DNA of 64,000 nucleotides from Saccostrea cucullata (taxonomy: Eukaryota): NCBI RefSeq assembly GCF_032062105.1, contig NW_026933724.1, forward strand, positions 372,001 through 436,000, in the 5' to 3' direction. This document shows, in pieces, positions 5,545 to 57,543 of this stretch. The position numbers were made by a program, and so were the translations under genes. The notes under the pieces are model-generated. The model saw nothing but the letters and a program-made list of their open reading frames with translations, made no database searches and was not told the DNA's origin. Within the stretch, counting starts at the first letter, position 1, and the number at the start of each line of letters is the position of its first letter.

Positions 5545-6822
5545 ATGAATGATTTTAAAATGGCTGGCAAGCAGAGAACCTTACCATTCACCTCTCCACG
5601 AAGAGAAACAAGAGCTGGCAGGGTGACGGAAAGAGATGCTAAATTGAGGCTAGAGGATAATGAGAGAGTTAATCATACTTCTGTGTCACATGACAAGTTA
5701 GAGAGACAGTCTACCATGCTCAAGTCCAGTCTAAACAGTTCCACAGTCAGAAGGCGACCGAACAAGAAGCCAAATCAAACCATAGCATCCAGTCAGAAGC
5801 TGAATCAGTTAATAATAGGAAGACCAAACATGACTGACAACAAAGTCAAAGACACCGACTCTTGTTTGAGACAACTGGAAGATCTATACAGCCAGGCTGA
5901 ACAGGTCTTAGGCTGTACAAAGGAAGAAGGCCTCTGTTTTGTAGAAGTTTTCAGAAGACTGTTGGAAGGATATGATGCCAAAAGCTCTAGGATAGAAGGA
6001 TTGCTGGTGGAAAAGGCAGACCTTTCAAAGAGAGTCATGGACCAAGAGGAGCGAATAGAAGAAAATTCAGAGTACTATAAAAAAGAACAAGCCAAATTTA
6101 AAAATCAAATAGATCAGAAAGATGTGGAAAATCAAAGACTGGATGATACAATTACAAAGCTTAAAGGAGAGAAAACTGAACTATTTCAAAAATTAAATAG
6201 ACTACAGGAACAGCTAGAGGAAGCAGCCATTAAACCACAAAAATCCTACTGCCAGGAATGCAGAACAGAAATCCTGGAACCTGTCTTTTCCTTAGAGTCA
6301 AAAGATGTGACTGAATTTGAAAAGGAAATTGGTCAAAATAGTATATCTTCCAAAATGAAAAATCTAGATAGATGTCATTCAGAAGAAACTCCATCTAGGA
6401 ACTTTGTAGTAAGAAAGCCCACTAAAAGTGATAGTGAGACATTAATCAAATCAGAACTACCAGATTCTGGTCCTCCCTCCCCCAGGCACGATTTCTTATG
6501 TGATTCATCACAGTCCACACCCAGATCATCAGTAAAATTAACTGAAACTGAAATATCTGGACGAGACCATTCAGACCCTGTAGCCAGTATCTTACTCAGA
6601 CCTTCAGTCCAACATAGGGATCTTCAGGTTGATAATCTACAATCCACGACAGAAATGTTTTGTAGATCCAGTTCCCGACACCACTACCTCCGCAGTAATA
6701 CAGAGATTTCATCCTCCAGCTCCTACTTCAGCTTTGCTAATCAGTCCGAGTACAGCGGGCCTGGACTCTGGTCAAGAGAGAGCAGTTCATTGTCATTTGC
6801 TAACAGTACATACTCAGAGTAG
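5545..6822 (+). CDS. Array gene 1: coiled-coil protein with doubled SFAN motif (425 aa, single coding exon)
   Basis: Long uninterrupted ORF. Splice acceptor ttttcag 2 nt before ATG. Contains QKLNQLIIGRP, a heptad-rich E/K/Q centre and C-terminal YFSFANQS / SLSFANST, all shared with neighbouring ORFs. Confidence 0.85.
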   Translation: MNDFKMAGKQRTLPFTSPRRETRAGRVTERDAKLRLEDNERVNHTSVSHDKLERQSTMLKSSLNSSTVRRRPNKKPNQTIASSQKLNQLIIGRPNMTDNKVKDTDSCLRQLEDLYSQAEQVLGCTKEEGLCFVEVFRRLLEGYDAKSSRIEGLLVEKADLSKRVMDQEERIEENSEYYKKEQAKFKNQIDQKDVENQRLDDTITKLKGEKTELFQKLNRLQEQLEEAAIKPQKSYCQECRTEILEPVFSLESKDVTEFEKEIGQNSISSKMKNLDRCHSEETPSRNFVVRKPTKSDSETLIKSELPDSGPPSPRHDFLCDSSQSTPRSSVKLTETEISGRDHSDPVASILLRPSVQHRDLQVDNLQSTTEMFCRSSSRHHYLRSNTEISSSSSYFSFANQSEYSGPGLWSRESSSLSFANSTYSE

Positions 6823-16221: not shown

Positions 16222-17205
16222 ATGGCAGGGCGTACAAACAGAACTGTGTTGAGGCTGCAGAGCTTCCCGATGGGGAGATCTAGACCAACTCCGCTACAAT
16301 CACGAAATCCTGTGTCTCCCAGAAAAACTAAAGGTGTGGCCACCAAACCACAGCCAGACAACCAAAAACTGGTAGTGGACCAGCTGTGTCAGTTCCTTCT
16401 GGGTTCAACTGCCATGAGTGATAATGCTTTCCTCAACTGTCAAAATACACTGAAAAAACTTGAACAGTTGCAAGCTGATATACTTAAAGAAGTACCGTGG
16501 GTAAAAGACCTGCCTGATCAGAATTATTTTGGAGGCATAATAGGACTTCTTTTGAAGGAATATCAGAAGCAAAAAAGTGATATTAAAAATTGGGTTGCCA
16601 ACTGTAGAGCAAATGAGAGGTTAATGGAATACAAAGGAAAACAAATCAAAGAACTCCAAAACAAGCATGAAATTCAGATACTGGCAAAAGATGAGGAAAT
16701 ACAAGGATTGGTTAAAGAGATAAGCCACCTGAAAGTGGAAAATAAAGGACTAACAGAGAACAATAACAAGCTACAGGAGCTAATTAGAAGGGAAGAAGAA
16801 GAGTGTAAGGAAAAATTGCAGAAATTTATATCTTCAGTGAATGTAAGTGAAATTGGGTCAAAGAACCAAAAAGAATCGAAACAAAGTAAAAGACCAAAAT
16901 CCACCTCCTCAGTTTCGGAGTGCCCATCCTCTCCTACAGGAAACTTTTCAAGAGAAACCTCAGGGAAATCTACCAGGAGTGATTCAGACACATGTGTTTC
17001 TTCTGTAAGTTTTGCCAACAGTGGGATTTCTACAGTACCTAACTTCAGGAATATAGAACAAGAGATCAGCGATATGTCAGAGTTAAGCTTTGCTAACAGT
17101 ACTCTTTCAGAACTTGGGAGATCTTGTTTACTATGTTCAAAAACATTCAACACTACACAAGTTTTTCTTTGTAACCAATGCATTGATAAATTCAAAATTA
17201 GTTGA
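16222..17205 (+). CDS. Array gene 3: coiled-coil protein with doubled SFANS and C-terminal CxxC-CxxC (327 aa)
   Basis: ORF with DQLCQFLLGS, coiled coil, SVSFANSG, ELSFANST and CLLC..CNQC. Candidate 5'UTR intron 16040-16219 ends 2 nt before ATG. Confidence 0.85.
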   Translation: MAGRTNRTVLRLQSFPMGRSRPTPLQSRNPVSPRKTKGVATKPQPDNQKLVVDQLCQFLLGSTAMSDNAFLNCQNTLKKLEQLQADILKEVPWVKDLPDQNYFGGIIGLLLKEYQKQKSDIKNWVANCRANERLMEYKGKQIKELQNKHEIQILAKDEEIQGLVKEISHLKVENKGLTENNNKLQELIRREEEECKEKLQKFISSVNVSEIGSKNQKESKQSKRPKSTSSVSECPSSPTGNFSRETSGKSTRSDSDTCVSSVSFANSGISTVPNFRNIEQEISDMSELSFANSTLSELGRSCLLCSKTFNTTQVFLCNQCIDKFKIS

Positions 17206-29188: not shown

Positions 29189-30814
29189 ATGGCTTACTGT
29201 GAGAGAAGGGCCCTAGAGAATTGTCGGACCACCCTGGTGGAAAGACTCCACCCTACAACCCAGTTCCTGGGGTGGTTTGTACAGCATGGGGTCATGAAGG
29301 GGAGAGACTTCAACAAAATTACGGTTTGTAACTGTAGCGAAAATATAACTGCCCATATTTTTTAAACAAATTTATTCACATTTTAAACATCCTATAAATT
29401 GTTTATTTTGGGATAAAAAAAATCCAAGGCATTAAAATGACTTTATCTCTCAGGAAATATATTATGGATAACAATTCTTAATTTTAGTCAAGCTACTCAA
29501 CATGTAATTTTTGTTCAGGATATAAGCACAATGTCACAGAGGACAGAAAACTTCCTCTTTCAAGTGATAGCCAGAAAACCTGGAGCTCTGAAATTCCTCA
29601 TCCACAAACTGAAGGCTGACAAACGCACAGCAGACCTCGCCAAGAAACTGAAAGATGAGGTGGAACAAGTGGAATTTATCCGCAGACAGAAGGTGGAACA
29701 AAGAAAACACAGGAAGATCCTCAAGCTCCAACAAGAACTCAGCAACCTCTACTTGTTTGCTTTTGGTGAATACTTTGTAAATGATAATTCCATAGACTTT
29801 CACTTACAAAAATTTAAGGTAGTCCGATCCTCAGGTTTATAAAATTAGCTGTTAAGTGATTAGAAATACTCATAAAAGTATCTCTGAATCCACAAAGTTA
29901 TGTAAATTTATCCACAGTATTTCTTTAAAGTTAAAGGTTTAAGTTAATCATATCATATAGGAAAAATTGTCAAAATTCCAATATTTTTGCAGAAAAAGAG
30001 AATTGGAATATCAGCAATGCATTTTCTAATTGCAAATTGATCAACAAATATATTTTAGGTTAAAAAACGATAGGTATCCAGGCATTCAGAGATACTGTCA
30101 TGATTTTTACACTTATTTGGTATTTTTTTTCTTTTATTTCCATCGTGTATTCTATATTCATAGTATAAAAGGCTTTTGGTATCATTGCAAGACACCACAA
30201 ATCACTTCTAATTTCATATCATGCTATTAAGCATTGGTATCTAAGGCTGGATTCAAGAAAATCTTATTTCTCTTAAACTGTATTAATTTTATTCCCTTTT
30301 GTAGGGTACAAATGTCAACTTTTATAAGACCTTTTCTGAGAGTTCCAAAAACGTTGAATCTTATATAGATAAATAGAATGAAAATTGTTGCATGAAAAAA
30401 AATCATTTTCAAGCTTCATTTTGATGTATTTCAAATTAAATATTAATTTTTGGAGTTATCTTTCCTGACTGAGGATCGGATATCCTTAAAGTAGCCATAA
30501 GCACAATCATTTCAGCATATCAGGAACTACAGCACACCTTTGGCCATGCTAAATCATTTCCAGAGATGGTCAAAATCATCCTGGCTAAAAATGCCGAGTT
30601 CGTTATGTGGATGAGGGAATTAGAAGCAGTACAGACAGCTATGGTAGATTTGAAATCAGACTATAAGAGAAGAACTTGTGTCATCAGGGAACAGTTAAAA
30701 AAGTATGAACAGAAGAACAAAGACCTGGAGGTTGAGAACGAGACACTCAGGCAAAATGTTGTAAGGACAAGGCAAAGTGTGTATAGAAAATCTGGTCCAC
30801 AAAAAATTGCTTAA
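29189..30814 (+). pseudogene. Array gene 7: CARD-like + coiled-coil gene interrupted by a transposon (exon1 29189-29323; exon2 29519-29817 + 30490-30814; ~252 aa when repaired)
   Basis: 135-nt first exon with a phase-0 GT-AG intron, as in the three paralogs. Removing 29818-30489 restores ...HLQKFKVAISTIISAYQELQ... in frame with ORF 30566-30814. Confidence 0.75.
29818..30485. mobile_element. TTAA-flanked non-autonomous DNA transposon (Kolobok-like) inside a coding exon
   Basis: TTAA(29814-17)-ggtagtccgatcctcag ... ctgaggatcggatatcc-TTAA(30486-89). Confidence 0.85.
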
Positions 30815-36887: not shown

Positions 36888-38135
36888 TATTCAGATTCAG
36901 CTTTAATATGAAGGGGTATCATGTAACAGTTGTGGTCTTTTAGTTTCTGACAGAGACATGTCTCTGGTTTCTGATCACACTTCACGCCCCTTGCTGCAAT
37001 ATTTTACCTTGAAAAGGGCAAATAACTTTATTTATAACAATTTATAGCACATCCAACCTGAACCGGTATTCACAAAAAAAATACCGCGATACGTATTGTA
37101 AAGAATGAAATCGGGATACACTGGTTAACCAGTAATAACGCACAGCACTAATTATCTCCCCTTGTTTAAGGGTCAATTTCCTAGGTTTATTAAAAACAGA
37201 TGCCCTTGGGCTCAAGGATACTAAGTGACAAATTTTACTAGGCCAAAGAGTTCTTGAGTTATGGCCCATATTATTTCAAAAACTTTAAAACACTCACAAA
37301 TGGCCAAAACATTAGCTCTTTCAGCATTTGGCTCAGATGAACTAAAAACTGTATGCACAGTAGATGTAGTCTTTTGAAAGTATTTCATAAAATTTTCTAT
37401 TTTTTAGTTACCAAGGCAACATCATGTTTAAAACTCAAAATCCAATTTAAAGATTTAAATGTCTTTTCTACATTTGTGCCCAGATCACAACTGTAGAAGG
37501 AGAAGCGCAAGTTGTTACAGTTTTCAAAGGTAACTTGTGAAATTTGGATTTCAATGAATTTAAATGAAATATATGGAGATAAAAGTGTGCACAATTATTA
37601 TATTTATATGCTAATTTATGGGATAATTGTTTTGAATTAAATTGTGTCAAAACAATATGTATTTTTGTGTCCCTCTCCTAACTTAAATAACAGAAATTAT
37701 AAAATTGTACACTTCTGAACTGGAGGCATTTTTCACAAAAGAACCTGGGTAGGATATCAAAATTCTGTCATTTGTACTGTCCTACACCGTGAAACTAACA
37801 CACCTAGAGTATTTCATAATTACTGACTGGTAAAGTTCTACTGACTTTCACATATGATCACCCTTAAAGAAAAGACAATATCTTCACAAGCTTAAATTTC
37901 AAGTCTTCTTTCTTTTAAATCATTGATTCATTAAACAATTTCGTTCAAAATAGGAAACAAATTTAGAAGGAAAGTATCACATACAAATTAGAATTTGCAT
38001 GACACAGCCAGGCTAAATTTGTAAGTATTATTTAAAAAACAAATCAAATATGCAATTTATATAATTCATTTACTACACCTGAAAATATTCTTTTTAATCT
38101 AATTTTAATCTGAATTCTATTTTTTAAAGCAAAGC

Positions 38136-39268
38136 ATGGATACCAGTGAGCTGTATGCTTTGGAGACTTGTCGGAAAGACATCAGTAATAATCTTCTGGT
38201 GACCGATGCTGTTCTACGTCGACTGGAAAGTACGGACATGATATCCCACCGGGATAGAATGTGTTTCATGGTAATCAGTCTCATAAAACAATTCAATTAA
38301 ATAACTACACTTAAGGACAACTCTAAAGCAATCTTGCTCCAAAACAAAATTTACCTGCTTTTGTGCAACAATGATTTATTTTACAATAATGAATTCTGGT
38401 TTTTTTTTTGTTTCAGAGAATAAGACAGAGTTCAAAGAGAAACACCCAATTAGCAGAGATAATGCGCAAGAAAGAAAAAGGTTTCAGTGCATTTACGGAA
38501 GCTTTAATGCTTGAGAGGAACATAAACCAATACTGTGTGGATAAAATGCAAAAAATGGTGAAGCACCATAAGCAGCAGCACAGGCTCAGAGAACTAAAAG
38601 AAACAGATCTTGTCACAGATGGAAAACCATTCAGGGACACGAAAAAATGTCCCAAGCCCTCAGTGGTGTTTGAGAGCTTCTACAATTCAGTGGCTCCACT
38701 GGTTCATGGTGATAATAAAGAAAACTGTATGGAAAATACAGAGAAGCAAAGCTGTGATGGCAGTGACATTGTGAAGGCCCTCAAACACTGCAGAATGGCA
38801 CTGGATCCCAAAGAGGAAAATTCAGATGTTTCATTAAAAGACCTGCAAAGCAAATACCTTCAGAAGAAACTGCAGACCATTGCCGATGATCTTCGATCAG
38901 AAAGAAGCATGTGGAAGAAAAGGATGGAAAGTCTCCTAGTAGAAAATGATGAATTAACAACAAAAGTGGAAGAACTTGAAAGTGAGCTACAGCAGGAACG
39001 GGATGAAAAAGACAAAATAATTCGTGAAACAGTGGACAGAATTGTCAAAGAGAGGCTGCTTCGACTAAATCACGTAGATACTAAAACTTCCTCTAAACCC
39101 AGTGTGACCATCAACATTCACAACCATGGACATTTTCAAATGGGTGGTACTAATGCCATGGACCTGGACTCTGATTCAACATCAGAATCGGACCAATCAG
39201 AGAAGCCGGACTATGAGAATCAGAATACACCGGACTTCCCTGGTCTGGCAGACAGCGTTCTGTATTAA
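38136..39268 (+). CDS. Array gene 8: CARD-like + coiled coil + RHIM-like tail (exons 38136-38270, 38417-39268; 328 aa)
   Basis: Spliced N-terminus MDTSELYALETCRKDISNNLLVTDAVLRRLESTDMIS..|RIRQSSKRNTQLAEIMRKKEKGFSAFTEAL fits the six-helix CARD pattern. GT-AG intron keeps the frame. Confidence 0.82.
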
Positions 39269-39344: not shown

Positions 39345-39482
39345 TAAACAATAAAATGTTTTCTTTGGTTGTTAGTACAGAAATTAATGTCGCAGCTTCT
39401 GCAGGAAAAAATACACACAAAAATACAACAGCTGCGACATTAATCCCTGTACTTACAACAAAAGAAAGCATTTTATTGTTTA
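39345..39482. repeat. Fold-back palindrome downstream of array gene 8
   Basis: aaacaataaaatgttttctttggttgttagtacag..ttaatgtcgcagct / agctgcgacattaa..ctgtacttacaacaaaagaaagcattttattgttt. Confidence 0.8.
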
Positions 39483-41104: not shown

Positions 41105-42247
41105 ATGGACCCAGCAGAACGTCAGGCTCTACATAATGTTAAGGAGGAACTCCAGAATTGTGCCGTTATCACAGACAAGATGCTGGTTCACTTCTTACAG
41201 AACCAGAAAATCACAAAGGCTGAAAAATATGAACTCTCAGTAAGTAGATCTCACTTTTCCTTTAAAAGAATCTATATAAAGTTACTTTTTTTTTATACCT
41301 TAATTCATTAACTTTATCATAACTTTGAACAAGAAATTAATTCTTTCACTTGATTTTTACAGAGGCTTGGTGCCAACTGTCAGAGAGTAAAGAGAATACT
41401 GCAGATCATGAAGAACCGAAAGGAGTCTCTGAAAACTCTAACAGAAGCACTTCTTCTTGATGTGAAAAATGACTACATTGTTCAGAAACTTCGGAAGAAA
41501 GTTCGATTCTGTCGAAAACGCCTCCAAGCTCAGGAAAACCAGACATCCTCATACTTTGGGCAGCTAGATGATGTGGCAGATATTCTTTACACACGTGGAT
41601 ATTTGACAATATATGGAGAATCTAAAAAAGTCACTGCAGGGACAAGCCATCAAGCTCTGGTGGAGGACATTAACAAATTCGTTGGAGATATCACCAAATG
41701 TCGCCAGAGTTTGGAGCCTTCAAGTGAGAGACAGAGTTTTCAAGAAATCATCGCCGAATACAAAGAAAAGAAACACCAGGAAATTGAAAACGCAAAACTT
41801 GTGTGTGCCAAACTTGTGAAAAGCAAAAACAGTGACCTAGAAGATAAACAGAAGCATATCAAAGACTTACAAGATGAACTTACGAAACTGAAAGTAGAGA
41901 ATGAATCCATGCGGAAGAAAATGGGAATAGAAATCAAAACTAAGGTACAGGAGAATGTGGACCGGCTTCTAATGCTTCCTCGTCTGTCTCCCGCTGATCC
42001 CGTACCTTACGTCGAAACAGAGGAGGATATTCTGGACAGGAAGTTACGGCAGCGTTCCTCGGTAAAACGCCCCGAGCCTCAGGAACATGCTCTTTCCGAC
42101 TCGGAGTCTGACTGCGAGTCTGACAGTGATCTTCCTGTGTCAAATAAAATGACCACCTCCACGACCCAAAAAGGATCAAAAATCGTCCATAACTACAATA
42201 TCTATAACAACCATATGTACAGTGACACAAAAATTTATCAAAATTAG
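41105..42247 (+). CDS. Array gene 9: CARD-like + coiled coil + N/Y-rich tail (exons 41105-41239, 41363-42247; 339 aa)
   Basis: MDPAERQALHNVKEELQNCAVITDKMLVHFLQNQKITKAEKYELS|RLGANCQRVKRILQIMKNRKESLKTLTEALL. Donor gtaagt and acceptor tttacag are in frame. Clear paralog of gene 10. Confidence 0.88.
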
Positions 42248-48434: not shown

Positions 48435-49602
48435 ATGGACTCTGCAGAGAAACAGGCATTACATAACTTGAGACATGACTTACAGAGCCACATGGTGATC
48501 ACAGATCGCATTCTCAGGCACTTACTACAACACAATAAAATCAACAAAACCGAGAAACATGACTTGTCAGTAAGTATTAGAAATCCTTACTTCTTTGGCA
48601 TAAATTAGTCTTCTACTAATAAGATTTTTAAAAAATATTTTCTACTAGTGGTTTTTGTAATTTTTGAACTTTTATATGTCAGTTTTGCAATTGATGTCTA
48701 ATTATTATTTTTTCCAGATTCATGGAGCTTCTTCACAAAAGATTAAGAAGCTGATACAGATCTTACAACACCGAGAGCAGCCCCTACAGGTGATGACAGA
48801 TGCCCTCTTGTTGGAGACAAGAAACATTTTTATTGTTAAAAAACTAAATAAGAAAGTGAGATATTATCGTTCAAGGCAAGAGCAGGAAGAAAACAAAATA
48901 AATAACAGCAATTGTAATCAGCTTCAACCAATCAGTGAAATTCTGTTTAAAAGGGGATATGCTGTTGTTTATGGTACATGTCATAAGCTGGCATATCCCA
49001 AAGGACATCAAAAACTAGTGGAGGGAATGAATGTCTTCATGAAAACAATAGAGGACTGTAGGGATACCTTCAATGGGTGTGAAACCAGACATTTCCAAGA
49101 CATTGTTAAAGATTACTGTAACAAAAAGGAAAAAGAAATCAAGGATGCCAAAGCCCTTTGTGCCAAATTAGTCAAGACTAAAAACTGTGAACTTGATCAG
49201 AAAGCTGGGGAAATGAGTTCCCTTAAAGAAGAAGTGGAAAAGCTCAGAAGGGAAAACGAAAAAATACGCAAAAATATGGATCAAGAAGTTCGTGAAAAAG
49301 TTCGAGAGGGTGTCCGACAGAGTTTACTGTCCATGCCTATGCTGAGTTCGTGTCTGGGTTTAAGGACAACTAGTATGGGCAGGGCACGAGAACACTCCGA
49401 GTCTTCTGGGTTTTCTGGGAATAGTGACACAGGGTCCACATCTTCCTCTGACCCCCGGGAGGACAGCGAGGATGAGGAGGGATTTAATACGGAGACTACG
49501 GACACTTACAGTGAGGCTGGCCAATCAGCAACGAGGATCACCCACAATTACAACATCTACAACAACTACATGTATAGTGAAGCTAGGCTTTATCAGTCCT
49601 AA
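48435..49602 (+). CDS. Array gene 10: CARD-like + coiled coil + N/Y-rich tail (exons 48435-48569, 48718-49602; 339 aa)
   Basis: MDSAEKQALHNLRHDLQSHMVITDRILRHLLQHNKINKTEKHDLS|IHGASSQKIKKLIQILQHREQPLQVMTDALL. Same exon length and phase as genes 7-9, and colinear with gene 9. Confidence 0.88.
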
Positions 49603-53722: not shown

Positions 53723-54218
53723 TATTCTGTCACTATTTGTTAGTAACAATAGAGATATTCTGTCACTATTCTTATTAACAATAGAGATATTCTGTCACTA
53801 TTCTTAGTAACAGTAGAGATATTCTGTCACTATTTGTTAGTAATAATAGAGATATTCTGTTACTATATTTAGTATCAGTAGAGATATTCTGTCACTATTT
53901 GTTAGTAACAATAGAGATATTCTGTCACTATTCTTAGTAACAATAGAGATATTCTGTTACTATTCTTAGTAACAGTAGAGATATTCTGTTACTGTTCACT
54001 CATCATTAAAGATATTCTGTCACTATTTGTTAGTAACAATAGAGATATTCTGCTACTATTCTTAGTAAAGGTAGAGATATTCTGTCACTATTCTTAGTAA
54101 CAGTAGAGATATTCTGTTACTGTTTATTCATCATTAAAGATATTCTGTCACTATTTGTTAGTAACAATAGAGATATTCTGTCACTATTCTTAGTAACAAT
54201 AGCGATGTTCTGTTTACT

Positions 54219-54820
54219 CATCATTACAGATATTCTGTTACTGTTAACTCACCACTATCCTCCAGCTGTGCCTGTGCCTCACTCAGCTGTTTACATCATT
54301 AGAGATATTCTGTTACTGTTAACTCACCACTATCCTCTAGCTGTGCCTGCGCCTCACTCAGCTGTTTACATCATTACAGATATTCTGTTACTGTTAACTC
54401 ACCACTATCCTCCAGCTGTGCCTGTGCCTCACTCAGCTGTTTACATCATTAGAGATATTCTGTTACTGTTAACTCACCACTATCCTCTAGCTGTGCCTGT
54501 GCCTCACTCAGCTGTTTACATCATTAGAGATATTCTGTTACTGTTAACTCACCACTATCCTCTAGCTGTGTCTGCGCCTCACTCAGCTGTTTACATCATT
54601 AGAGATATTCTGTTACTGTTAACTCACCACTATCCTCCAGCTGTGCCTGTGCCTCACTCAGCTGTTTACATCATTAGAGATATTCTGTTACTGTTAACTC
54701 ACCACTATCCTCTAGCTGTGTCTGCGCCTCACTCAGCTGTTTACATCATTAGAGATATTCTGTTACTGTTAACTCACCACTATCCTCTAGCTGTGTCTGC
54801 GCCTCACTCAGCTGTTTACA
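54219..54820. repeat. 75-bp tandem repeat x8 containing a CCDC73 exon end and splice donor
   Basis: Near-identical units. On the minus strand they read ..cagctagaggatagtg|gtgagttaacagtaacagaatatctctaatg. Confidence 0.9.
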
Positions 54821-57543
54821 TTGAGCGTACAGTAACTTGAACCTCCCCTCTGTTTCTGTCAGCTGATTCAAATGCTGCTCTGTAGACTGGAGATGAAGGT
54901 GTAGTTTTCTCTCCTGTTCTGTGACATCCTTCTCCAGTTTGTATTTCACAACCTGAAAAACACTTCCCTACATTGCTCTGTCCAGCTTCCCAGCCTTCAG
55001 ACATCAACATCATAACCTTAAAGTTACATCATGTAAAATGAATAATAAATCAGCCAAGAATACTTCTAAATGTGTAGAATGATATTGAATATAAAGAAAT
55101 ATTTTACCTATTATTAAATAATTTAAATTAAATATTATCAATCAGAGAGCTTGTTTTTAAAATGGTCTTCATTTTAGTTTGGCTAAGAATGAGCCGGCAG
55201 ATACTCTCACCTCTAATTTCCGAATTTCATCTTTCAGCAGGCTAATTTCTTTATCTGTGCAATCTTTGAACACCTTGTGTTGTTTCTATTACAGATATAT
55301 AAAGTTAATAAAGCTCATAATGTTTTTATGCGTTAAAATAAACTTTCATCCAAGAGATATTTCTATCCATACACGAGTCTCTCTACTGGAGATAAAGATC
55401 CACATTACTTATAAGTAGGGATGTCAAATCGGTCAATTTTCAATACTCGGTTACTCGGACGTTTTTCCGATCGAGTACCCGGGTACTCGGTAAAAGTGTA
55501 AATAAATATGAACAAGTAAATTGAAGACTGTAAAACATTGTAAACTCTTGTAGAAATAAAACCAGATGCACTGATGGACGCTTATCCGTAAATGTATTTC
55601 TGTTGTAATAATAATGATGAGTACTTCGTATTAAAATTTAACATACCGGTACCAATTTTTAAATTCAATTCATTTATCAGATAAACACAAGAAATAAAAT
55701 CATAAGTTGTTCACATTGTTTTTGTTTAAAAAAAAATAATTTGCTCCGTAATTGTAATGTAACTCTTTGTCGCGTTTGACGACCAGGTATCAGTCGTCAG
55801 AGCTACGTACAGTATCAACTTGAACTTGATCAACTTCTCCTAACAGAGCGGATACACGATTTTAGTTCACTTGTTCGATCCGAGATTTATATAGTATTAC
55901 GGGACGGTATTTTGTACATGTAGTTTGATGCAACGATGGACATCAGTTTTTTTAAAGCCTTTGCCTTCAACCAGTTGTATTGGCATGTAATCAAACACAA
56001 ACATATCAACAATCGCACGTGTAATCAGAGACATATAAAACCATATATATGTCTTGGTGTAATACATTGCTCTTCTCCGAGAATTTACGGCTTCTCTGAG
56101 AATTGACAAAATTGTCTATTTTTTTTTAAACATAATGGATCTTAAAACGATGTTCAGTGAAAACAAATAATTAAAGCCAAACAAAAAATAAGGAAGAAGG
56201 CAGCCGAAGGTGAGAAAAGCCAGGTACCCCAGGTGCTTGGTCACGATAATTACTGTAATGTATAAACACTGCCACAGGCGATAACGGTCATTTAGAGTCG
56301 TAGTAAACCCTAATTACTGTATGTACAAGTGCAATGAGCATTTTACGTTTTTAAACAGATTGTTTAATGCATTAATAAATAAGATTAGAAATATTCCAAA
56401 ATATACATCCGAGTAACTGAGTACCGATTTTAGTAAAAATACGACATTTCCGAGAGGTTAATGGGTATTGACATCCCTACTTATAAGTAATTACTCTCAG
56501 TGAATAGAAGGTGGACAAATTAAAACATTCTAGATCATAATCTGTATATGTGGACAACAATCTGCCACTAATACAAGATGTAAATTATAATAATCATTAG
56601 TTTTTTTTTTTTTTAAATCTATAGTTTATTATTGTGACATTCTCTGTGAGATGTTTTACTAAGGGTGACACTTTATATCAGACCAGCTGTTCCTCGGCCC
56701 TGGACAGCTTCTCCTCACACTTCCTGTCCGCCTCCTGTAACTGTTTCCTATACTGCTTGGTTGCCTCTGTCAACTTCTGAGATTCTGACTCCTAAACCAT
56801 TGCATCAAAAGCATGTCATTTACAAGGTAAGGCCAAAATAAAATTATAGTTTGTTTGGAATTGCCTCCCGCCTCATTGAAATGCCCCCTCCTGAAAAAAA
56901 TTTATTGACCAAAAGTAGGAAGATTTTTTTTTTATTTAATCATTTTTTTTTACCCATTACATGTATCACATGCACCATACAAAACACTGAAATATAGTGT
57001 CAGATCTATGTAGAATTAGGTTCTTTTTGTTGATGGTAGATACTTTTTTTAAAAGTCAGAAAATGACTGTTTACTGAGAGTTTTATCAAAAATTTAGAAT
57101 TTATCTTCAATAAAAATAAAAAACAATTCCCCTGCCTCCTGTGTCTGAAACCCTTCAGGCGGCAATTCTAAACAAACAATTTTTTAAAGATGGCCTAAGG
57201 GAAGCAACTCTTTATTTGAAATTCAAATGATAGTGTCAAAAATATTCTCAGATGAAAACTGTTACACTTACACATTTTCTAATTAGTTGATATTTCTCTT
57301 GATCAGCCCTTTTTATTCTCTCTTCATTGTCTTTGTCATTCATCTGTTGAAAGTAATAAAATAAAACAATATCGATGAGATCACAGACAGAGCTAAATAA
57401 ATCCTTTTCTCTATTCTATTTTTTTCTAAATATATGTATGTGCACCAAGGATGTCAAAGTCTGAAATAATTATACAGGAAACCTATCTTTATATACCGTA
57501 TAAGTGGAAATTTTAGCGAGACGCAAATTTAGCGATTTCTCCT

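Follow-up and report, generated by a model that had tools for sequence, protein, structure and literature searches.

Does the disordered tail of an oyster CARD protein carry a RHIM, the motif whose amyloids drive vertebrate necroptosis and NF-kB signalling as well as the fly IMD pathway? The question is raised by gene 8, a two-exon gene in a 64,000-nucleotide stretch of the Saccostrea cucullata genome (contig NW_026933724.1, positions 372,001 to 436,000; the whole stretch is called the window below and is numbered from its first letter). An earlier note on this DNA, made from the letters alone, had singled out a peptide at the C-terminus of the gene 8 product as RHIM-like and had proposed an unusual CARD-coiled coil-RHIM architecture. 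CARD filaments drive the CARD9/BCL10/MALT1 pathway, and no protein is known to combine the two types of assembly. Our reading is that gene 8 encodes an adaptor in which a BCL10-type CARD at the N-terminus and a long coiled coil precede a disordered tail with a divergent RHIM-type motif, and that it would pair, probably, with an adaptor of the same genome in which a RHIM is joined to a Death domain (DD); on this reading we find the evidence evenly balanced. Exon 1 and exon 2 were searched separately, and whole-protein analyses were performed on natural database proteins (P0024, P0029 and P0001).

The peptide is encoded in frame with exon 2 (38417-39268, plus strand, as are all gene 8 features), which confirms its place at the C-terminus. 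Positions 39104-39166 read GTG ACC ATC AAC ... GAC CTG and translate to VTINIHNHGHFQMGGTNAMDL; immediately 3' of the motif follows an acidic stretch rich in Ser, Asp and Glu (DSDSTSESDQSEK, 39167-39205), which is kept in orthologs. The motif is laid out as I-N-I-H-N, a turn (H-G), H-F-Q-M-G, a second turn (G) and T-N-A-M. The human RIPK3 RHIM used for comparison in the earlier note is correct, being equal to RPLVNIYNCSGVQVGDNNYLTMQQTTA of chain 7dac_A, and the gapless alignment claimed for the two peptides holds once they are offset by one residue as written, with 6 of 19 residues identical (N, I, N, Q, G, N) and the other core positions hydrophobic. The frame shared by gene 8 and RIPK3 is N-I-x-N-x3-phi-Q-phi-G-x2-N-x-phi, where phi is a hydrophobic residue. 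The description of the core, FQMG, as non-canonical is likewise borne out, two of its four positions lying off the consensus. A relaxed DNA pattern (I-x-N-x3-phi-Q-phi-G-x2-N) has a single match in the window, and 100 shuffles gave none; a match by chance is unlikely at the scale of the window.

A comparator was found in the same genome. The Pfam RHIM model (PF12721, gathering threshold 20 bits) was scanned against the whole assembly and returned a single RHIM above its cut-off, at 24-25 bits; the next exon downstream encodes a Death domain (30.9 bits). This RHIM-DD gene lies on two near-identical contigs (C2547:143335-144271, minus strand, and C2848:8131-8361, plus strand), which are probably allelic copies (haplotigs). 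Searched against solved structures, the oyster RHIM has human RIPK3 chains as its top three matches, and it could therefore serve as a positive control. No kinase-like frame was seen by eye in the 10 kb upstream, and the gene is therefore called a kinase-less adaptor; it resembles Drosophila IMD. Orthologous RHIM-DD exons of other oysters read I-H-I-H-N-S-K-N-V-Q-V/I-G-x-x-N-V-M. The adaptor is presumably the counterpart of the Crassostrea gigas 'CgRHIM-containing protein', which was reportedly published by Liu et al. in 2024 (Dev Comp Immunol 159:105226). RIPK1 homologs with RHIM and DD have been described in zebra mussel and other Spiralia (PMC12119088).

When the 19 residues of the oyster RHIM were aligned without gaps to gene 8 exon 2, the best match was TINIHNHGHFQMGGTNAMD (39107-39163), with a BLOSUM62 score of 41, 8 of 19 residues identical and a shared frame of I-x-I-H-N-x3-phi-Q-phi-G-x2-N-x-M. 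When the same protein was shuffled 50,000 times, only 2 shuffles scored as high (Gumbel P 2e-4). Among the 34,888 19-mers from all open frames of the window the gene 8 peptide ranked first, the next scores being 30 and 24. A profile of the RHIM-DD exon, compared by hhalign with a profile of gene 8 orthologs, gave one local alignment (E 2.5e-4) that pairs the RHIM with the motif and the acidic Ser run of the one with that of the other. The RHIM-DD adaptor and gene 8 have in common the unusual I-x-I-H-N start and the acidic Ser-rich run after the motif, but they differ in several respects: the core of the adaptor is a canonical VQVG or VQIG above the Pfam cut-off, whereas FQMG falls below it, a basic stretch separates its RHIM from the acidic run, and it has a Death domain where gene 8 has CARD and coiled coil. 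These alignments support a specific similarity of the gene 8 motif to a bona fide RHIM that the genome itself encodes.

Conservation was assessed in two further oysters, Saccostrea echinata and Ostrea edulis. SKPSVTINIHNHGHFQMGG is unchanged in all three species; the Q-x-G core, whose conservation had been named as a check, is thus the same in both orthologs. Ratios of non-synonymous to synonymous substitution rates (dN/dS) were calculated for a motif window of amino acids 229-250 and for the whole exon. Against O. edulis, the motif window holds 6 synonymous and 3 non-synonymous changes, none of the latter within VTINIHNHGHFQMGG (dN/dS 0.074, compared with 0.123 for the whole exon at a synonymous rate, dS, of 1.2); against S. 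echinata the counts are 5 and 1 (dN/dS 0.035, compared with 0.123 at a dS of 0.5). On these motif-window values the constraint on the motif equals that on the CARD half encoded at the start of exon 2 (38417-38572, dN/dS 0.015-0.039), and purifying selection on the motif is supported. In deep mutagenesis of human RIPK1 and RIPK3, the positions that mattered most for nucleation were an 'aliphatic tetrad' (Y531/V450, I533/I452, I539/V458 and I541/V460) and M547, and acidic flanking residues acted as gatekeepers (bioRxiv 10.64898/2026.02.19.706818). Mapped by way of the RIPK3 and oyster-RHIM alignments, the tetrad of gene 8 would consist of I, I, F and M, and the residue matching M547 would again be M, with Q, G and three Asn kept.

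The protein that carries the motif was examined domain by domain. Exon 1 (38136-38270) comprises 45 codons from the ATG and encodes the first half of the BCL10-like CARD; the second half (...LAEIMRKKEKGFSAFTEALMLERNINQYCVDKM...) begins exon 2 and matches BCL10 by profile. The top three PDB matches of a family profile of 11 members (A7) were BCL10 CARD chains, the best with E 6e-4, while all other matches had E > 0.1; profile positions 18-97 align to BCL10 residues 21-99. A five-sequence family profile matched the BCL10 CARD with E 0.0075. The Pfam CARD model gave no match at E <= 10, either on full-length proteins (P0001, P0024, P0004 and P0010) or on the exons taken separately. AlphaFold2, run with a single sequence and with an alignment of only 11 sequences, modelled the N-terminus as three long helices at a predicted local distance difference test score (pLDDT) of 50-70 and did not recover a six-helix CARD, and Foldseek found nothing at E <= 0.001 with the model. 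Because the fold was not recovered, the domain is called BCL10-CARD-like on its profile matches only. Residues 185-261 of the O. edulis protein were modelled as one helix of about 77 residues with pLDDT 88-97, which corresponds to the coiled coil of gene 8 (38834-39064, a single long helix); Pfam gave weak matches to coiled-coil families here. A CARD-like domain followed by a long coiled coil is the layout of CARD9/CARMA, as judged from profile and model, orthology to these proteins not being implied. From residue 262 to the end the model has pLDDT 30-37 and no secondary structure, in agreement with the disordered Ser/Asp-rich tail described in the earlier note, DSDSTSESDQSEK adjoining the motif. 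A short motif in natively unstructured sequence is also what is expected of a RHIM, since RHIMs are flanked by unstructured regions (PMC4262963). The tail ends in a conserved extreme C-terminus, F-x-G-L-A-D-S/N-V-L-Y/H, followed by TAA (39233-39268).

Gene 8 corresponds to S. cucullata LOC134239161 (P0029), whose C-terminal 328 residues match the translated exons throughout when compared by eye. The exon 2 product (283 codons and TAA) is 88% identical to a S. echinata protein, and the O. edulis ortholog (XP_048730964.2, P0024) has exactly 328 residues and an identical exon junction. The junction ...CFM|RIRQ... is common to P0024 and P0029 and supports the gene 8 intron (38271-38416, phase 0), which opens with a GT donor at 38271 and closes with a polypyrimidine tract and AG. 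In the NCBI models of S. cucullata (P0029, 554 residues) and S. echinata (P0001, 482 residues), exons of gene 7 are joined to gene 8 through an acceptor just upstream of the gene 8 ATG (regions 29717-30781 and 38124-39265), unlike the O. edulis model, which stands alone with its 328 residues. Downstream, an inverted repeat (39345-39482; 53 nt, 91% complementary, with a loop of 32 nt) begins 77 nt past the stop codon and has the appearance of a miniature transposon. An AATAAA polyadenylation-type signal lies in its left arm (39350-39355), 82 nt past the stop codon. RNA reads from other copies accumulate on the repeat and on the sequence past 39490.

A HMMER search against 1.8 billion representatives returned only eight relatives of gene 8, those with a named source apparently all being oysters (Saccostrea, Ostrea and Crassostrea virginica), and the family looks specific to oysters, where it occurs in tandem copies. 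The CARD half, the coiled coil and an I-I-R-E-x-V-D-x-x-V-K-E-R-L box are common to its members, whose tails differ. In the LOC133191386 group (P0004) the tail reads ...I-N-N-V-E-N-L-Q-L/F-S-x-Q-G-S-N-Y-V-M and is kept between two species (the second being P0028). The P0004 gene itself lies some 40 kb away from the gene 8 ortholog on S. echinata contig JAVQLB010000023.1 and has no close counterpart in the window. The C. virginica group ends in ...Y-V-Q-I-S-E-R-G-K-N-N-M, and genes 9 and 10 of the window, whose CARD half matches that of gene 8 (hhalign E 1.7e-7), end in a conserved Asn/Tyr-rich motif, H-N-Y-N-I-Y-N-N-x-M-Y-S (42179-42244 and 49534-49599, plus strand). With hhalign the RHIM profile gave a non-significant hit to the tail of the P0004 group (E 0.16), though at the expected place; its hits were off target in the C. 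virginica group and spurious in genes 9 and 10. Because these tails fail against the RHIM profile, gene 8 is the most RHIM-like member of the family.

Several results weigh against a RHIM in gene 8. The Pfam RHIM model, proposed as a check in the earlier note, gave no match to the motif at E <= 10 on exon 2 or on tail peptides, and its scan of the whole assembly did not return the gene 8 locus. Exon 1 and the natural full-length relatives gave no Pfam RHIM match either. When PDB sequences were searched with the tail by phmmer, no RHIM chain was found, the matches being acidic-tail noise from cadherins. The core tetrad of RHIMs follows (I/V)-Q-(I/V/L/C)-G (bioRxiv 10.64898/2026.02.19.706818), from which FQMG departs at positions 1 and 3, where Phe and Met are hydrophobic but outside the published set. 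As the Pfam, phmmer and core-tetrad tests all fail, gene 8 falls outside the RHIM family in the strict sense. The hhalign alignment to the RHIM-DD exon has a probability of just 43%, and low-complexity acidic sequence contributes part of its score. Over a whole proteome a few gapless scores as high as 41 could arise by chance, and the case therefore rests on similarity combined with context and conservation. The Q-x-G at the motif position is not kept in more distant paralogs, and the P0004 group retains only the flanks there (S-S-I-N ... A-M-D), without the 13-residue core; the core is a feature of orthologs, not of the family. No RNA read fell on the gene 8 exons in three oligo-dT runs under the same species label, each read to about 45%; the reads of these runs mapped only to the repeat downstream. 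Finally, in two overlapping metagenome contigs of Joint Genome Institute (JGI) sample 3300045951 (L028:1156-1805 and L027:1-503) the gene 8 ortholog is broken after KERLL by an insertion resembling a short interspersed nuclear element, with a duplicated target, and its motif differs in four places, one of them a stop codon where the core Q should be. This copy looks dead and drifted, a pseudogene in that lineage or haplotype, and since the ortholog is broken there, gene 8 is dispensable in one sampled lineage.

The flanking signature of the family is nevertheless present and aligns without gaps to established RHIMs, with hydrophobic-x-I-x-N before the core and N-x-(M/L) after it. The term RHIM-like thus stands as regards similarity to the oyster RHIM and conservation, while the Pfam model remains silent. 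A protein search of the same genome with the gene 8 tail returned the tail itself only. The DNA pattern I-H-N-x3-phi-Q-phi-G-x2-N gave 10 matches in five families there, compared with none for a reversed control; three of the five families, lying in short open frames or tandem repeats, were rejected as chance-like. Because of these families, and because the pattern is partly derived from gene 8, the matches do not count as independent support. A tandemly repeated element at C6731:211700-221699, with the translation ...PKVIWGSSRSLE...DLDPRSFGEVQGHWKK..., is a chance match to the RHIM-type pattern.

How, then, is the conservation of the tail best explained? The main rival to a RHIM-type motif, which we regard as a serious possibility though a less than probable one, is that the stretch is conserved as a short linear motif or as a short beta-strand docking to a folded partner; the likeness to RHIMs would then be due to chance, and signalling would proceed through CARD and coiled coil only. 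The negative Pfam result and the off-consensus core would follow naturally, as would the different motifs in the tails of paralogs, and chance matches do exist, the DNA pattern built from both motifs having also hit three non-coding or repeat families and the expectation for this score at proteome scale being not far under 1. It is harder to see on this account why the best-matching 19-mer is exactly the most conserved stretch of the tail, why all structurally critical RHIM positions are retained and why the order of motif and acidic Ser run recurs in the RHIM-DD gene. Gene 8 is, moreover, a death-fold adaptor, the class of protein that hosts invertebrate RHIMs (PMC4262963).

Two further explanations appear much weaker. 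The cluster H-N-H-G-H, with three His in five positions that are all invariant in orthologs, might be a metal-binding or pH-sensing site that accounts for the conservation and leaves the Q-x-G likeness incidental; we think this improbable, as conservation reaches well past the histidines (S-K-P-S-V-T-I-N-I and F-Q-M-G-G-x-N-A-M) and the RHIM of the RHIM-DD gene has the I-H-I-H-N frame without the later ones. Histidines in a beta-arch would also fit a pH-tuned amyloid, so that this idea complements the RHIM-type reading more than it competes with it. That the tail is non-functional, or gene 8 a silent or decaying copy, seems more improbable still. The missing RNA reads, the disrupted ortholog and the fusion of genes 7 and 8 in the NCBI models could be taken in this sense, but the reading frame is intact in three species, dN/dS is 0.04-0.07 in the motif and 0.12 over the whole exon, where dS is about 0.5-1.2, and splice sites and polyadenylation signal are intact.

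If the motif is of the RHIM type, the protein could work as follows. Its CARD would receive a signal by CARD-CARD polymerisation, and the coiled coil would gather several tails. The clustered motifs might then stack with each other as an in-register cross-beta (beta-arch) core or, more likely, co-stack with the similar RHIM of the kinase-less RHIM-DD adaptor, which is reminiscent of IMD or of the tail of RIPK1, and the signal would be passed to effectors of the Death-domain, caspase-8 or NF-kB type. Spontaneous nucleation may be prevented by the acidic, Ser-rich run that follows the motif, in the role of a gatekeeper. Amyloid formation, partner, pathway and coupling to CARD filaments are all inferred here from sequence, and the positions of the mutagenesis study were transferred to gene 8 in the same way. 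A more far-reaching version, which we consider unlikely, takes the oyster genes as an expanded BCL10-like CARD and coiled-coil family with exchangeable amyloid-type 'address' motifs in the tail (I-H-N...F-Q-M-G...N-A-M in gene 8, H-N-Y-N-I-Y-N-N in genes 9 and 10, ...N-L-Q-L-S...G-S-N-Y-V-M in the LOC133191386 group), each of which would steer the CARD filament signal to a different cross-beta partner, that of gene 8 being an IMD-like RHIM-DD adaptor.

Known systems resemble gene 8 in part. With the RHIMs of vertebrate RIPK1 and RIPK3 (and of TRIF and ZBP1) it has in common the length of about 19 residues, the unstructured setting, four hydrophobic tetrad positions and the kept Q, G and Asn, but its core is FQMG, its turn is His-rich, Pfam does not match it, and the host protein is neither a kinase nor a TIR or Z-alpha protein. 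To our knowledge, no coiled-coil CARD protein or BCL10 protein has a RHIM-like tail. Among solved structures the gene 8 CARD is nearest to BCL10, and CARD followed by coiled coil recalls the CARD9/CARD11/BCL10/MALT1 signalosome, although the Pfam CARD model does not score the domain. Divergent RHIMs in invertebrate immune proteins, at the usual death-fold sites, were described in 2014 (PMC4262963). The Drosophila cRHIM proteins (PGRP-LC, PGRP-LE, IMD and Pirk) are receptors and adaptors with such divergent motifs that signal to an adaptor with RHIM and DD (PMC4262963); their motif consensus is another one, however, they involve neither CARD nor coiled coil, and nothing points to orthology with gene 8. 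Fungal HET-s/NWD2 and bacterial NLR-associated amyloid motifs are also short, terminal and able to template a partner that bears the same motif, but they belong to other sequence families and kingdoms and provide a functional analogy only.

The closest precedent for the domain combination is BiIV1_006R of a cockle iridovirus, in which CARD and RHIM occur in one polypeptide and in a bivalve setting; this protein is viral, standard models pick up its CARD as well as its RHIM, and its CARD is closest to bivalve caspase-3/9-like proteins (PMC12452177). No relatives of gene 8 were found in a scan of viral contigs. For the architecture put forward in the earlier note, the coiled coil was recovered by modelling and the CARD by profile, but neither the Pfam CARD model nor a six-helix AlphaFold2 fold lent support. 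It may still be called unusual in that no adaptor with BCL10-like CARD, coiled coil and RHIM-like motif was found described in the literature, while the combination of CARD and RHIM as such has the viral precedent. A divergent RHIM-type motif in a new architecture is thus partly supported.

Other features of the region were recorded alongside. Upstream (5545-28462, plus strand) lie six tandem genes of coiled-coil type, with open reading frames (ORFs) starting at 5545, 12122, 16222, 17843, 19290 and 26888, each with one or two copies of [I/L/V/M]-S-[F/C]-A-N-[S/C]. The last copy falls within the final 20 or so residues in five of the six, both copies being further inside in the third (16222-17205); the element could be a candidate phospho-dependent docking motif. 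The CARD genes of O. edulis and S. echinata fall within the span of a large gene model on the opposite strand (1050-1061 residues, with a CCDC73 Pfam match in O. edulis), which may mean that the CARD cluster is intronic or that the large model is an artefact. A 211-residue ORF at 54205-54840 (plus strand) consists of tandem units of about 24 residues (DILLLLTHHYPxAVPxPHSAVYII) and is most likely a translated minisatellite.

If the RHIM-type reading of gene 8 is true, CARD filaments would hand over directly to amyloid, and the gene 8 adaptor may connect immune signalling assemblies of two types. Functional RHIM cores would span a wider range of sequence, with Phe and Met admitted to the tetrad and a His-rich turn. 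Were the tail motifs of the family exchangeable as well, they would amount to a combinatorial amyloid code that links signalling of the CARD-BCL10-MALT1 (CBM) type with that of the RHIM type in an invertebrate. Bivalve viruses themselves encode a protein with CARD and RHIM, and gene 8 and the RHIM-DD adaptor would be a concrete partner pair for antiviral and cell-death signalling in farmed bivalves.

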